Of a stretch of DNA of 64,000 nt, positions 16,601 to 22,600 are shown in pieces (the first letter of the stretch is position 1; each line of letters begins with the position of its first letter). Location: contig NIVC01001986.1 of the NCBI GenBank assembly GCA_002269645.1, positions 19,177-83,176 on the forward strand, in the 5' to 3' direction. The notes under the pieces are model-generated. The model was given only the letters and a program-made list of their open reading frames with translations, was not told the origin of the DNA and did no database searches. This DNA is from Macrostomum lignano (taxonomy: Eukaryota). The position numbers were made by a program, and so were the translations under genes.

Positions 16601-19600
16601 AGCAATCCTTGATTGTTTTCAATTATCAGAATCCGCCGTGCCGGTCTGGTCGCGAAGTTCAACTAAGCACGCTGGAGCTAATGAACGGGCTTGTAGACAT
16701 TCTCCAATTCTCAAGCCTAGTCTGCCCAGATCTGATGCACGAATCCATGCAGGCTCTGCTGACTCTGCATCAGCCGCATATCATTGAATTGTGGAATCCA
16801 GTTGAGCCAATGATCTGCTTTTGGGATATCAGCAGTCACGTGTTGTACACCGTCAGCCAGAAGTTGATCCAACGTCAAATAGCCAATTATGGCGACCTGT
16901 TGCGCTGGCTCAAGGATATTCTCATCTGTCGGAACGCTTTCTTGGAGAAGCACAAAGAGCTAGCTAATGTTGGCTCTAATGAGAACTTGTGCAGACAGGC
17001 TCTGATCAAACTAGAAATGGTCTTCTTCATGTACCTGTGGTCATTGGACATTGAAGCTGTGCTAACCGCTATGAGCTGCTTTGGTGAGTCATCAATGATG
17101 AAGTTTTTATTTCTTTTGTCATTATCTAGTGTGATTTGTACAGTCTATTATCTTAAATAGCTACGTTGAAGTTTTTAATCGAGGTTTTTTGTTTAAATTG
17201 TACTCGTAATATTCTTGTAGGATTTCTGAGTTGTTGTAGTCAGTTGCTTAACTCGAACATTTTTCTTTACTAAACAGGCCTACTCTGCCAGGAGGCCGAG
17301 CTGCGCTCTCTCTACGACGATATAATGCCGCTGACGCTGATGCCGAACTACGACATCTACTTGGAGATCGCCCAGTCCAGCCAGACTATATTAACAACTG
17401 GCCGGGCGCACTTGCAGAAGCAGATCATGATGCTGCTGAGGAAGGTGCTTTATCCGACGCCTGGTAAGGAGAAGCTGTTTGAGAATGATCCCAATTTGGC
17501 TTTAGCACCCAGGGGCTTTAGCACCCAGGGGCGACAAATGAGTTGTTGGGAAACTGTTAAAAGCCCTCCTCCCGTTAAAAGTGTTACCAAGACAAGAATC
17601 GCTAAAGAGTCATTGCAAATAAATCACTAGTGTCTCTAGCGACTTTAGAGGCGACTCATGTGACTTTTTAACGACTCAAATGACTGTAATGCAACGGAGA
17701 GGCGACTGTTGAGTCATGGCGCATCACGTGAGTTGTAAACTCTCTACTAACTTAAATAGACTAAATAGAGTTGTTAAAATTGTGAAATGCAATTATATTG
17801 TAATTCATACAGTGACGCAAATGCGCTTTAGCCGCAACTCAGTAATTCTACTGCGACCCAACTATCGCGCCTCAGACACGACTCTACGGCCTTAGAGTTA
17901 TTATAGAAACCCTCCAGAGTCATTTCTGAGTCGCAGATAATAAAGCGCCTTAAATCCAATCTGAAAACCTTTTGGCGACTTTTACCGGGACATCTCGTCG
18001 CTTTGGAGTCGTCTAGAGGCACTTCTTTCTTTATATTACATGTTTTACCTGCAACGACTTTGTGGTGACGCAATTGGGGACTCTGGGACGCTTCTTGACC
18101 TGGGTACAATTTCTGTACAATTAGCTATTGTCCGTATATTTGCTTCATCTGTACCCCAAATCCGGCATTAATATCCCAGGCAACATCCAAGCCTGGGAGG
18201 AGACCTTCATGAATTGGAAGTCGACCACCAACTACCTGGTCGGTTATCCCAAGGTAAAGTCGGACGAATCATCCGACGCGTCATCCACGTCGGCGTATCA
18301 CAAATCGATGCTGAAACGACGTCACAGTCATCAGAACACGGATCACGAGCTGGAGGACATACTGAACGAATGGGTGAATCAGACCGGCTTCCTGGCAGCT
18401 CTGGGCAGTGTAACTCTGCATTTTAACTATGCACCGATCAGGTATCCCCAACTGCCTGGAGGCGGGGGCGGTGGTGGCGGCGGGGGCGGTGGCGGCAGTA
18501 GCAGCGGAGGAGGCGTCGGTGGAGGTAGCGGCGTCAGCGGGCTGAGTGTCACCGGCGGTAGCACAGCTGGCTTGTCGCCCGCAGCCAGTGTTGTAACAAT
18601 ATCGACCACTTTGGACGGCAGTAGCACCGGAATTCATGCAGGCGGCGTTGGCAGCGGCGGCGCCGGAGGCGCCATCGGAGGCGGAGGCTACAACACTGCC
18701 GCACTGGCCGCTGCTGGGCTCAATCCGAAGCTCTATCCCATGGGAGACAATCAGTACTGCCCAGTTACTCAGTAAGTGTCTCACGGCCGTTTGCTATAAT
18801 ATGCATCATTTGTGTTTGTTTAAATGATCTGGTGTTTTACAAGCTAGACTATCTAGTTCCATTGTAATTTTAAAGCATAACCTGTGATTAAGGGGCTTTA
18901 ATTATCTCAGATACTAAACTTTGTAGGATTATCTCAGTTGCTAAATTTGTAGGATTATCTCAATTGCTAAATTTGGTAGGATTATCTGAGCCAAAGGATT
19001 ATCTTGCCAATGTAAAACACATGTACACACTATTGCTGTTTGTAAATGGTGACGCACAGTACACTATATTGGAAGTGATTTGTGTCCGTACCTGCTTTCA
19101 TACCTAACAAAGATTATTGTTCTGTTGTAAACCACCCTTAAAATTCTTAATTAGCTTTATTTAAATCTTGAAAAGCACTGTTACACCTTGCTTTCTGTCT
19201 AGCAAGTTTCTTTTATTAAGAAGCATTACATTTATTTCAAACCGTTGCACTATACACTACTGCTTTGTATCCGGAAACAGTAGTAAAACTATAATTTAGT
19301 TGGAAAAAAGAAATTGATAAGAAAAATATGAAATTTAGCGAACACTGCGCGCAACTATAATAATATCTGTCTTGCGTGCCAGATGCTTCTCCAGTCAAGA
19401 GTCTCTGTTTCACTACGGAGGCGGCAGCGGCGGTGGCACTGGCAGTCCGTGGCAGTCGTCAAGTCGTTCATTGGAAACTCACCCAATTTTAAGTCAAGCC
19501 GTTGGCTGCCGAGCTAGCGGTCTTGTTAATAACTACAGTAGGTCTTTGTTGACACAGCATCAGCAGCAGCAGCAGCAGCCTCAGTGTCTCAATGTTCGAC

Positions 19601-22600
19601 AGTTCTCTTACGTGCCTGAGTAAGGCCTCTGAGCAATGAGCATACAGTACACAGCTAGTGCACGGCAACTTAAGTGGAGGGACGCGCTACACTCGCAATT
19701 AAAGGGGGGAGGCATAGCCGACAGCGCGGCGCTCTGATGTGCCAGCGGCCCAGGCTCGATTCCAAGTGCAGTCGCATTAATTTTTGGCGCTTAATTGGAA
19801 TCTCGGCTTGGCTCTGCTCGTGCAATGTAATTAACGTCTTTGAGGGCCAACCCAACCCCTAGGTACAGTGAAGTGTACATGTGTGCCTGCTCAGGGGAGT
19901 CGGCGGAATGGGCAGTAATGCCTCTCGCCGGTTGTGTGACAATATCGCTTAAAGTGCGCCAGGGTTCACACAGTCCTCTGCCATGTTAGCCTTAAATTTT
20001 TAGGAATTCTCACCCCTGAAAAAGTTAGGAAAAGTTAGGAAATTCGGTATTGAGAAAATTCACTAAACAGACAGGAGCCGCTGAAATTTCATCCGAACTT
20101 TGCTTGTGAGTGCACAGCGTCCTTCTGCTTCAGCTTCCCATGAGCTAGTGTCTTTGCTTCCTATGATACTATTAACAATTTTAACTGTCTTAAAATTAAA
20201 GTGCACTGCAGTTCTGCCGTGGACTTATAACTCCCACTAATGCGGCCGCACTTGAAATAAATTCAGCAATATCTCGTACAATTATTGCAGCATGAAATTT
20301 AGTTTTTTAGTTAATTAAAACATGTTTTCATGCTAATGGGAAGGCTGAACAAAACTGGCTTGACTGCATGATTTTTCTGCTATACAAAAAACGATATATT
20401 ATATACTCTTTTTCAGTAGTAAAATTAGCGTTTTGCGTTTAAAAAAGTGAAAGTAGAGAGATAGTCGATATTTTGCTAAATAATAAATTTTAAGTTTTGG
20501 AAGAATGGCAGCCGCAACAGTCGCCTCTGGTTATCTACAAGAAGACCTCTTAAAATACCTTAAACCATTAAAAGGTTACTTAAAAAGAAATCAATTTAAG
20601 ACAGAAGATTGGCAAGATTGCACAAAAAACTTAAAAACCCAAATCCAATGCGTGTATAGAAAGCAAGTGGGAAAACGGGTGGTGCCCAAGCCCCCAGACT
20701 AGGCCGATAAACAGTTGGGCTTTCTCCTTGCCTGCTTGTGTCTGACCTTGCTCTCTCCCCTTACTGCTCTCTAATTGGCTGAGCTAGATTGGGCCTGCCC
20801 CCTGGGTTGAGTTTCGTCCATCTGACTTTGCCCTCTCTCCTTACTGCTCTCTAATTGGCTGAGCTAGATTGGGCCTGCCCCTGAGTTGAGTTTCGTCCGT
20901 CTGACTTTGCCCTCTCTCCTTACTGCTCTCTAATTGGCTGGGCTAGATTGGGCCTGTCCCTAGGCTGAGTAGGTTGGACTTGTATACCTCGAGTTAAATG
21001 TTTGTTACATTCTTAACCACATATGCAACCAGAGGCTACAAACCCAGAGGAAAAAATGGAATTTTAGCTTCCAAATTAAATTTAATTGACACTGCGCAGA
21101 CAAACTACTAAAAAAGAGTAGACCCTCTACTTTATCAAAAATTTAATTGCGAGTGAAATATCTAATTTTTCTGTGCTTGTAACTATTTTTTGTAAACTTA
21201 CGCAGCATGTTTATATTCTTAGATGCTTTTATTTTATAGATTCCCAAGTAAGTGTCCAGACGGTGCTTTAGTTTACGGAAATTTACCTTGTAGATACGTA
21301 GTATAAAATGGAGCTTATCCTATCCTGCGTAGCAAATCCTATCGTCGCACACTCTGTGCCCTTGGTGAGAAGAGAGTTGGTTCTCCCCAGCTTTTAGGCA
21401 ATTTTAGAAAGGTTTTTTGAGCATCGAAACTGAAATATTATTTTTGTAATCTGTTAGCTCTTTGCTTGTCATTTTTAATTTTGTTGATGACAATTAATTT
21501 TCAGAAAAAAACTTGATTTTAGTTTTGTTTTAGAAGTTTTTCTGAAGTGAATTATGTGAAAATTAATCGCAACGACTTGTTTTTAATGGTCGAGAGACTT
21601 AAGACCAAATATTATTAATGGCACTCGTCAAACCGACAGGTTCATCGGCAACATGCTGAAGCTGCTAGTATGCCAGAATGAAAAGTTCGGCGCCCAAATT
21701 CAACGACACGTGAAAGAGCTGTTGGGCCAGCAGCTTAACCCGTTTGTCTATCCGTTGCTATTCGAACAGTTGAAAATCTACATCGACAAGTGCTTCAATT
21801 CTCAGGGTGGCCACGTGTTAGTTAGCGATTCCAACACGCTATTCATGGAGAATGCTATCTACATTTTAAAGAGCATTTTGGAAGATCCGCGCGGTGGTCA
21901 AGCTGAATCGCGCAGCGAACATCTCGCCGGCTCCTCTCTGGAGAGCATCATACTAAACATTATTCGCTACATTCGCCATGTGGAATGCCTGCACTCAAAG
22001 TCTGTGAAAATTCGTGTCTGCCAACTAGTCACTGTCCTGATGGCTCGTCGCGAAGATCTGTCCTTTCGACAAGAGATCAAATTTCGCAATAAGGTATAGT
22101 AATTTTAACCCACCACCCCATCGTACCAGCAGGCGAGCAATCAAAACAACTTAAATCACCCACCACCCCATCCTGCTAGCAGGCGAGAAATTAAAACAAC
22201 TGAAATCACCCACCACCCCATTCTACTAGCAAGCGAGAAATCAAAACAGCTGAAATCACCCACCACCCCATCCTGCTAGCAGGCGAGAAATTAAAACAAC
22301 TGAAATCACCCACCACCCCATTCTACTAGCAAGCGAGAAATCAAAACAGCTGAAATCACCCACCACCCCATCCTGTTAGCAGGCGAGAAATTAAAACAAC
22401 TGAAATCACCCACCACCCCATTCTACTAGCAAGCGAGAAATCAAAACAGCTGAAATCACCCACCACCTCATCCTACTAGCAGGCGAGCAATCAAAACAGC
22501 TAAAATTACCCACCAACCCATCCTACTAGCAGGCGAGCAAGAAAAGCAAACATAAACCAGACGCCATAAAATCTTTTCTTGAAATTAACTCAAGGTTACG

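Follow-up and report, generated by a model that had tools for sequence, protein, structure and literature searches.

A stop-free, in-phase segment of NF1 intron 11 that is probably a chance pseudo-exon

The 237-nt stop-free segment found in intron 11 of the neurofibromin (NF1) gene is probably an incidental open frame, i.e., a pseudo-exon, lying within a single-copy, GC-rich island of this intron. The sequence-based evidence is, on balance, unfavourable to an established coding exon because the acceptor is weak, the codon usage is like that of the null, the GC content of the three codon positions is flat, and the peptide has no homologue in the collections searched. Pseudo-exons, or decoy exons, are stop-free stretches with splice-like ends which are normally ignored by the spliceosome, and the candidate is, by our reading, not spliced in.

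The host gene was recognized by a 2103-aa continuous spliced ORF (positions 16063-38472) which, together with flanking ORFs, matches residues 21-2701 of the human NF1. The exon upstream of the host intron, exon 11 in the numbering of the earlier note, terminates at 18771 in ...TGC CCA GTT ACT CA/GTAAGT (the slash marks the exon junction), where the split codon CA/ sets phase 2. Residues 1-81 of this exon align with human NF1 772-853, while a Gly/Ser/Ala-rich loop of 109 residues, which has no human counterpart, stands in place of human 854-885. The exon junction of intron 11 corresponds to K893/F894 of the human protein. The position of the intron is ancient, given that at least 18 further NF1 loci, all from metagenomes, share it in the same phase (YCPVT./F[ILV]G). 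An alternative acceptor of the downstream exon, at 21595, would add 15 residues but was rejected for its very poor acceptor score (-7.8). The features of this region are as follows:

18180..18771, plus strand: NF1 exon 11, upstream of the host intron, within the continuous spliced ORF, ending ...DNQYCPVTQ
18772..21639, plus strand: host intron (intron 11), 2868 nt, phase 2, GTAAGT...ACAG, mostly 29-38% GC
19330..19930, no strand assigned: single-copy GC-rich island, 48-57% GC within the AT-rich intron, of which the candidate is the first 40%
19339..19620, plus strand: open frame that holds the candidate, 94 codons from stop to stop (TAG at 19336-38, TAA at 19621-23)
19361..19382, plus strand: putative 3' splice region TAATATCTGTCTTGCGTGCCAG, with four G in the tract and an AG-free zone of 42 nt
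19383..19619, plus strand: candidate cassette, 237 nt (3 x 79), symmetric phase 2-2, 79 added residues
19416..19445, plus strand: GGN/AGC-rich run GGAGGCGGCAGCGGCGGTGGCACTGGCAGT, which reads as 10 residues
19561..19578, plus strand: (CAG)6 run, poly-Q in the proposed frame
19599..19619, plus strand: last seven codons, QFSYVPE, similar to the pre-helix motif Q[YF][CS]PV[TA]Q, which is conserved
19620..19627, plus strand: putative 5' splice site GTAAGGCC, 4.7 bits
21640..22093, plus strand: downstream NF1 exon, ending FRNK, which aligns with human NF1 894-1040

The candidate is directly preceded by an AG (19381-82) and directly followed by GTAAGG, from 19620, and the TAA that closes the open frame sits within the GTAAG of this putative donor. 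When the segment is read through, CA plus its first A preserves the Gln codon, 78 codons without a stop follow (CFSSQ...FSYVP), and the final GA joins the G of 21640 to make a Glu codon, after which the protein resumes with FIGNML. The sequence thus bears out what the earlier note had stated of the frame, that is, a stop-free segment of 237 nt, in phase 2-2 within a phase-2 NF1 intron, which encodes the 79 residues quoted there; a length divisible by three and a frame without stops in the phase of that intron are features of a functional cassette exon. The placement of the insertion at about residue 915 was roughly right, although the exons sum to approximately 945 residues and two stretches towards the 5' end are unmapped. 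One predicted tryptic peptide of the candidate translation is QFSYVPEFIGNMLK.

The main alternative, which is possible but doubtful, is a genuine lineage-specific cassette exon, the weak acceptor of which would make its inclusion regulated. The correct frame, phase, and symmetry are consistent with this reading, as are a donor within the range of the real sites and a weak acceptor, which is typical of regulated exons. The 24 mapped introns of the gene were the basis of the splice-site models and of the chance tests; as a 24-position acceptor matrix built from 24 sites was judged to be over-fitted, a pooled-tract model was used instead. Under this model, trained on the gene's own 24 acceptors, the acceptor that had been described as good scores -2.1 bits and falls at the bottom of the real range, with one of the 24 real sites lower and 14% of 2005 intronic AGs scoring at least as high. 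It also has no YTRAY branch motif at -12 to -55, a motif that is present at 13 of the 24 real sites and 29% of the decoys. A generic T-rich model rates this acceptor better (+2.4) and the donor worse. In-frame alternative acceptors would be those at 19395, 19494, and 19542. The donor, which had been called strong, is good on its intron side (GTAAGG) but off consensus on its exon side (TGA), and its overall score is average, given that it exceeds six of the 24 real donors, lies near the 25th percentile, and is equalled by 5% of the intronic GTs.

The codon usage tells against a maintained coding exon. The codon score of the candidate (+17.5 bits) is lower than in any of the 52 real windows of 78 codons, which have a mean of 41.5 and a minimum of 21.8, and it is positive almost wholly because of the GGC and CAG runs, since the six GGC codons contribute 10.9 of the 17.5 bits and the CAG codons 6.8 bits, which together make 17.7, whereas the remaining 59 codons score 0.025 bit/codon, matching the composition-matched null. 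By comparison, the real CDS scores 0.56 bit/codon, the pooled non-conserved low-complexity inserts of NF1 0.44, and the lowest single insert 0.12. The GC contents of the three codon positions are flat (0.54/0.51/0.53, versus 0.54/0.39/0.62 in the CDS), with no third-position GC signal (GC3 periodicity) in the candidate, and, against composition-matched open shuffles, the candidate reaches z = 1.75, while twelve real windows reach z = 2.0-5.3. In codon usage, GC3, and z, then, the candidate has no coding signature beyond its base composition. On the other hand, a young exon need not have codon bias, and no other intronic 234-nt window on the plus strand reaches the codon score of the candidate, which is a point for the real exon and a counterpoint to the pseudo-exon. 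Across the island, 120-nt windows read on the minus strand reach codon scores as high as those of the proposed plus-strand frame, and this equality between the strands therefore marks an effect of composition, rather than a signal of the frame. The (CAG)6 run encodes Gln in the proposed frame, like those of real exons, given that the other CAG/CAA runs of at least five units on the plus strand are three in number, all within NF1 coding exons and likewise read as poly-Q; this too speaks for the cassette and against the pseudo-exon.

The frequency with which such a configuration may arise by chance was estimated from dinucleotide shuffles, in which a candidate had to be at least 237 nt long, in phase, and within the same site thresholds. 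Shuffles yielded such a candidate in intron 11 in 0.7-3.7% of the trials and in at least one of the 24 mapped introns in 63-89%. A candidate of this kind is unlikely in intron 11 alone (P about 0.01-0.04) and likely somewhere in the NF1 gene (P about 0.3-0.9). The value for intron 11 (P 0.007-0.037) favours the cassette over the pseudo-exon; with the look-elsewhere correction, however, a chance candidate is expected. A stop-free frame of 78 codons has, given the composition, P = 0.076 (approximately 8%). In-phase pseudo-cassettes also occur elsewhere in the NF1 introns, both in low-complexity or tandem repeats:

5880-6199: in-phase pseudo-cassette
9159-9449: in-phase pseudo-cassette

In the window, i.e., the whole stretch of 64,000 nucleotides analysed, all other intronic candidates of this kind, whichever their strand, are tandem or low-complexity repeats, and this one alone is not, a further point for the real exon and against the pseudo-exon.

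The pseudo-exon could arise through a simple sequence of steps. Stop codons are scarce in the island because it is poor in A+T, and the GGC-type run and the (CAG)6 run, read as Gly and Gln in this frame, can add no stops to it. A TAA that happens to fall inside a GTAAG then closes the frame, and an AG found 44 nt past the upstream stop completes the exon-like appearance. The segment would not be maintained as a protein-coding exon of neurofibromin; the normal mRNA would join 18771 directly to 21640 (...YCPVTQ/FIGNML...), as in all the other NF1 sequences seen, and inclusion of the candidate would be at most at the level of noise.

The protein context bears on the genuine cassette exon in both directions. 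If real, the exon would, when included, place 79 disordered residues, rich in Ser, Gln, and Gly, where the cysteine/serine-rich domain has its C-terminal edge (human K893/F894). It would lengthen the already disordered loop that immediately precedes the next helical repeat and its first helix, and its C-terminus, QFSYVPE, would re-supply part of the displaced QYCPVTQ motif. In a low-confidence AlphaFold2 model, a helix spans residues 195-206, the first to be predicted beyond the disordered loop, and the junction lies at 198/199, so that the insertion point is one turn inside this helix, in agreement with the earlier claim that the insert would split a helix. When the insert is modelled, it is predicted to be disordered (pLDDT <50 for residues 65-273) and the downstream helices are kept, which is consistent with a real exon, both models being of low confidence. 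The loop that adjoins the insertion site is disordered, long, and very variable in length among NF1 proteins and species, so that an insert could be tolerated here, a point in favour of the cassette and against the pseudo-exon. The likeness of QFSYVPE to the pre-helix motif, which has the same bearing, reached P = 0.003-0.01 in an anchored, ungapped score, but was found post hoc, and the similarity goes no further. Against the cassette, the three Cys and one Trp of the insert are atypical of a maintained disordered segment. QYCPVT is near-invariant directly before the helix in approximately 30 distinct NF1 sequences, so that a wedge of 79 residues which separates this motif from its helix would be unusual.

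No relatives of the candidate peptide were found, which also counts against a real cassette. There was no homologue among the proteins that share words with it in 5.8 billion clusters. A full reading of 1.84 billion representatives yielded no relative either; the best matches there begin close to the end of the cassette, mostly at query 85-98 and at the earliest at 57. None was found in metagenome contigs or in the 80 NF1 loci, all distant, that were retrieved by a metagenome scan with the flanking exon. In the 18 orthologous introns (186-2214 nt), which come from these loci, no in-phase cassette candidate exceeds 123 nt. Identity in the conserved exon next to the intron is only 58-69% for the closest NF1 sequences that were retrieved, and the protein libraries yielded none closer than 58%. 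Homology of the cassette with the variable loops of six NF1 proteins was not convincing (P 0.045-0.78), as five of the six comparisons were non-significant and the lowest (P0005, P = 0.045) does not survive six tests, and a CLN..VR resemblance to NF1 loops noticed by eye is due to chance. What may be proposed, with little confidence, is a young, species- or genus-specific NF1 cassette, in which the regulated inclusion of a disordered linker of 79 residues is accompanied by a QFSYVPE that re-creates the helix-capping motif.

Another origin, which is improbable, is that exon 11 was duplicated in part, its 3' end (Gly run, pre-helix motif, and donor) having been copied in tandem to leave what is now a decayed relic; on this reading the relic may once have been an alternative or duplicated exon and would now drift as intron sequence. 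A GGC-type run is common to exon 11 and the candidate, QFSYVPE/GTAAG parallels QYCPVTQ/GTAAG, and the last 30 nt of the candidate match the end of exon 11 at 12 of 30 positions, the highest value of 24 exons, although another exon reaches 11 of 30. In the search for significant similarity to the neighbouring exon, as would be expected of a tandemly duplicated exon, however, the GGC repeat gave the only significant local alignment, in either DNA or protein, the right-anchored alignments of the tail were not significant (protein P 0.09-0.26, DNA P 0.05), and the similarity, judged by eye, stops before the intron.

There is also a slim chance that the island serves another purpose, as an intronic regulatory element, a small RNA hairpin, or a composite terminal exon, with the ORF as a by-product. 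A composite terminal exon, which is just as remote, would lead from the acceptor to an end at the TAA of 19621-23, and would truncate neurofibromin. This reading is compatible with a single-copy, GC-rich island in an AT-rich intron, with a hairpin of 85 nt at 19738-19822 (-35.5 kcal/mol, z = -2.5), and with an AATAAA at 20256. The hairpin, however, was picked from a 1-kb scan, four of 200 shuffles fold equally well, and no Rfam family was matched, even at E = 5; AATAAA is common, with 141 copies in the window, and no Pfam domain was found in any frame of the island. An origin from a transposon or SINE was rejected, as the candidate occurs once in the 64-kb window, lacks both terminal and direct repeats, and has no tRNA, Rfam, or Pfam match; a B-box-like GGCTCGATTCC noted by eye at 19757 led nowhere. 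An antisense or nested gene was likewise discarded, since no minus-strand frame is long and composition accounts for the high codon scores on this strand.

If the candidate is a pseudo-exon, it offers caution only, that is, chance alone produces in-phase stretches of 200-300 nt, free of stops and flanked by splice-like sites, wherever the intron sequence of NF1 is GC-rich or repetitive. A real exon would be the first to be described as alternative at this position of a neurofibromin. It would provide an isoform-specific disordered segment in the CSRD, a phosphorylation-rich region of this Ras-GAP, which is under intensive study in flies and humans, and would exemplify the birth of a new exon from low-complexity intron sequence.

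The alternative exons known in human NF1 are 9a (10 aa), 10a-2 (15 aa), 23a (21 aa), 43, and 48a (18 aa) (PMC7692384), and those of Drosophila are coding exon 14 and 3' end variants (PMC11048932). All of these map elsewhere than K893/F894, which agrees with the earlier statement that no alternative exon is known at this site (PMC7692384, PMC11048932). The candidate, if real, would resemble them in the insertion of in-frame residues that leave the rest of neurofibromin unchanged (PMC7692384), but it is far longer (79 aa), of low complexity, without a homologue, and at a different position. The lineage-specific, low-complexity inserts within the constitutive NF1 exons of this species, such as the 109-residue loop of exon 11 and the poly-Q at 48985-49074, share with the candidate their GGC and CAG runs and their richness in Ser, Gly, and Gln, but their codon usage remains exon-like when the repeats are set aside (0.12-0.83 bit/codon; 0.44 for the pool), which that of the candidate does not (0.025). 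With intronic pseudo-exons, the candidate shares one average and one weak splice-like site, a long intron, and a lack of both conservation and any coding signature beyond composition, with equivalents at 9159-9449 and 5880-6199, although it is longer than most pseudo-exons, is not itself a tandem repeat, and has an end that resembles a conserved protein motif.

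The neurofibromin (NF1) gene occupies about 5280-51480 on the plus strand, where splicing its open frames at GT-AG sites yields one unbroken ORF of 2103 residues (16063-38472); this ORF and those flanking it correspond to human neurofibromin residues 21-2701. Given that the gene model is incomplete at 12054-16062 and 38473-48771, where the coding exons for human residues ~421-481 and ~2440-2560 are unplaced, exons are numbered approximately here, as is the residue at which the insertion would fall. The exons have 52% GC and the mapped introns 38%, and several of the introns carry long minisatellites. 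Other features of the window and of intron 11 are as follows:

305-1201, plus strand: C-terminal part of an amiloride-sensitive (pickpocket/ENaC-type) sodium channel gene (PF00858, E = 7e-19), upstream of NF1
43450-47150, plus strand: protein-kinase gene within a ~9-kb NF1 intron (~39400-48772), on the same strand; its ORF 45648-45956 matches Pkinase (PF00069, E = 1e-20), and the adjoining ORFs look like further exons
20506-20699, plus strand, intron 11: 64-codon ATG-initiated ORF just 5' of an 80-nt tandem repeat in three copies (20740-20970), its sole match, REV1_C, being sub-threshold (E = 0.024)
2320-3240, 5780-6295, 12330-12890, 13340-14280, 24430-24900, 26370-28290, 30730-31200, 33220-33430, 42450-43190 and 44610-45490: long minisatellites, most in introns of NF1, many without a stop in any of the three frames over 100-230 codons; they are the source of most false exon-like frames in the window
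63400-64000, window end: probably belonging to another gene; 63-66% GC, both strands carry long open frames, and a (CTG)9 run is present

Exon 11 ends in CCA GTT ACT CA at 18771, followed by GTAAGT, and the downstream exon begins G TTC ATC GGC at 21640, which bounds a phase-2 host intron of 2868 nt. The candidate cassette, 19383-19619 (plus strand, 237 nt), is preceded by AG at 19381-82 and directly followed by GTAAGG; its inclusion would keep the Gln (CA+A), add CFSSQ...FSYVP and place a Glu (GA+G) last before FIGNML, for a net gain of 79 residues. The ends, length, phase and added residues that the earlier note described can all be read off the sequence. The stop-to-stop frame spans 19339-19620, and its terminal TAA is part of GTAAG, as is automatic with a phase-2 GTAAG donor.

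The same note called the acceptor good and the donor strong, and the outcome depends on the model. In splice-site models trained on the 24 introns of the gene with both ends fixed by homology, the donor is average, at 4.7 bits: it outscores 6 of the 24 real donors and is matched by 5% of 1249 intronic GTs. The acceptor scores -6.4 in the full position matrix, under all real sites, although this matrix is over-fitted, and -2.1 with a pooled pyrimidine-tract model, a value matched by 14% of 2005 intronic AGs; the sole real acceptor below it is the constitutive 21640, the weakest of the 24. This low score results from four G in the tract, where G is strongly avoided in this gene. The YTRAY motif, present at 13 of the 24 real sites and 29% of decoys, is absent 12-55 nt upstream of the candidate acceptor. 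A generic T-rich model gives the opposite order (acceptor +2.4, donor +0.2), so that site strengths are model-dependent, and a fair summary is one average site and one weak-to-moderate site. For the downstream exon, an in-frame alternative acceptor at 21595 (plus strand), 45 nt before 21640, would add 15 residues, and was rejected for its very poor score (-7.8 bits).

All symmetric, in-phase, open AG...GT segments with sites at least as good as the candidate's were enumerated in the 24 introns, which yielded two further loci of at least 237 nt, the CT-rich low-complexity 9159-9449 and the minisatellite 5880-6199. In any phase, the remaining plus-strand matches in the whole window are all true exons or these two loci, and each of the three minus-strand matches lies opposite coding or GC-rich gene sequence. 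The first of the two loci (plus strand, 291 nt, in intron 8164-11496) is a second stop-free pseudo-cassette whose splice-site scores exceed the candidate's, yet its CT-rich sequence scores -0.19 bit/codon. Dinucleotide shuffles of intron 11 produce such a candidate in 0.7% (whole-intron shuffle) to 3.7% (300-nt blocks) of cases, and shuffles of all 24 introns produce at least one in 63-89% of trials, chiefly from repeat-rich introns; the configuration is thus unusual for intron 11 alone, but not for a scan of the whole gene. Corrected for the look-elsewhere effect, the expectation by chance is about 0.3 per gene or higher. In favor of a real exon, the candidate is the sole one in the window that is not itself a repeat.

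In codon log-odds contrasting the exons and introns of the gene, the candidate scores +17.5 bits, above every other plus-strand intronic window but below even the lowest (21.8) of the 52 real 78-codon windows, whose mean is 41.5. The contrast with the intron is mostly one of base composition, given that the candidate lies in a 600-nt island (19330-19930) of 48-57% GC embedded in intron of 29-38% GC. Measured on stop-free shuffles of matched composition, the candidate has z = 1.75 (P = 0.036) and 12 real windows have z = 2.0-5.3; 7.6% of composition-matched shuffles have a stop-free frame. The score comes from GGC (10.9 bits) and CAG (6.8 bits), the other 59 codons contributing 0.025 bit/codon, whereas non-conserved low-complexity inserts in constitutive NF1 exons, with the same codons removed, retain 0.12-0.83 bit/codon (pooled 0.44). 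GC at codon positions 1/2/3 is 0.54/0.51/0.53 (CDS, 0.54/0.39/0.62), and in 120-nt windows over the island the minus-strand frames score level with the proposed one. These null-like statistics leave the candidate without sign of coding selection beyond two trinucleotide runs, although this would also be expected of a very young exon. The CAG run does read as Gln in the proposed frame, in favor of a real cassette, as do the three other plus-strand CAG/CAA runs of at least five units, all within NF1 exons.

The island is single-copy in the window and lacks terminal repeats, tRNA, Rfam matches and Pfam domains in any frame. An 85-nt hairpin at 19738-19822 (plus strand), 120 nt 3' of the putative donor, has an MFE of -35.5 kcal/mol (z = -2.5); it was chosen from a scan, 4 of 200 shuffles fold equally stably, and no Rfam family matched. 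Either an intronic small-RNA precursor or chance may explain it.

Neither of two protein libraries yielded a protein similar to the 79 residues, the best matches beginning near the cassette end (mostly query residues 85-98, the earliest 57), and a metagenome scan with the cassette peptide also found none. A flanking-exon scan of metagenomes recovered 80 NF1 loci, none matching the cassette (best E = 0.16), and these relatives, the nearest NF1 sequences found having 58-69% identity in the exon that follows the candidate, are too distant to gauge the frame conservation of a lineage-specific exon. A phase-2 GT-AG intron of 186-2214 nt lies exactly at the junction, between YCPVT(Q) and F[ILV]G, in at least 18 of these loci (L020, L035, L044-L080; for instance L045, 383-1475), and is absent from others (L001, L016, L021, L027, L029 and L030); the intron position is therefore ancient, with repeated loss. 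In-phase open candidates with decent sites in these introns are all of 63-123 nt. When the cassette was aligned to the variable loops of six NF1 proteins, P lay at 0.045-0.78, the lowest failing correction for six comparisons.

The junction CPVTQ|FIG aligns with human K893|F894, at the C-terminal edge of the cysteine/serine-rich domain (residues 543-909; PMC7692384). In M. lignano it is preceded by 109 Gly/Ser/Ala-rich residues, standing in place of 32 unaligned human residues. An AlphaFold2 model of the normal isoform, indicative only (4-sequence alignment, mean pLDDT 54), has pLDDT <50 for residues 72-193, begins the helix at P195 and places the junction (198|199) one turn inside it, so that the claim of a split helix seems fair on this low-confidence model. 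With the cassette, pLDDT is <50 for residues 65-273, and the modeled helix starts with the final seven residues of the cassette. Among the NF1 sequences compared, the nearly invariant QYCPVT motif abuts the helix in every case, and the loop upstream of it is very variable, with up to hundreds of residues. The seven cassette residues just named, QFSYVPE, are similar to the family motif Q[YF][CS]PV[TA]Q, which the cassette would displace from the helix, a likeness that argues for a real exon (anchored ungapped score, P = 0.010 vs cassette shuffles and P = 0.003 vs peptides before 1194 intronic GTs), but counts for less because it was spotted post hoc. It also stops short of the upstream residues, and the DNA-level likeness of the cassette end to exon 11 is 12/30, vs 11/30 for another exon.

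When the chance expectation, the null-like codon usage and the two modest positives are weighed, the candidate is probably an incidental pseudo-exon, a real lineage-specific cassette exon of NF1 is rather unlikely, and the remaining weight is shared by another role for the island and a duplication of the exon 11 end that has since decayed. As the earlier note held, none of the known NF1 alternative exons maps to this junction; if real, the candidate would thus be a new NF1 alternative exon, of a familiar kind.
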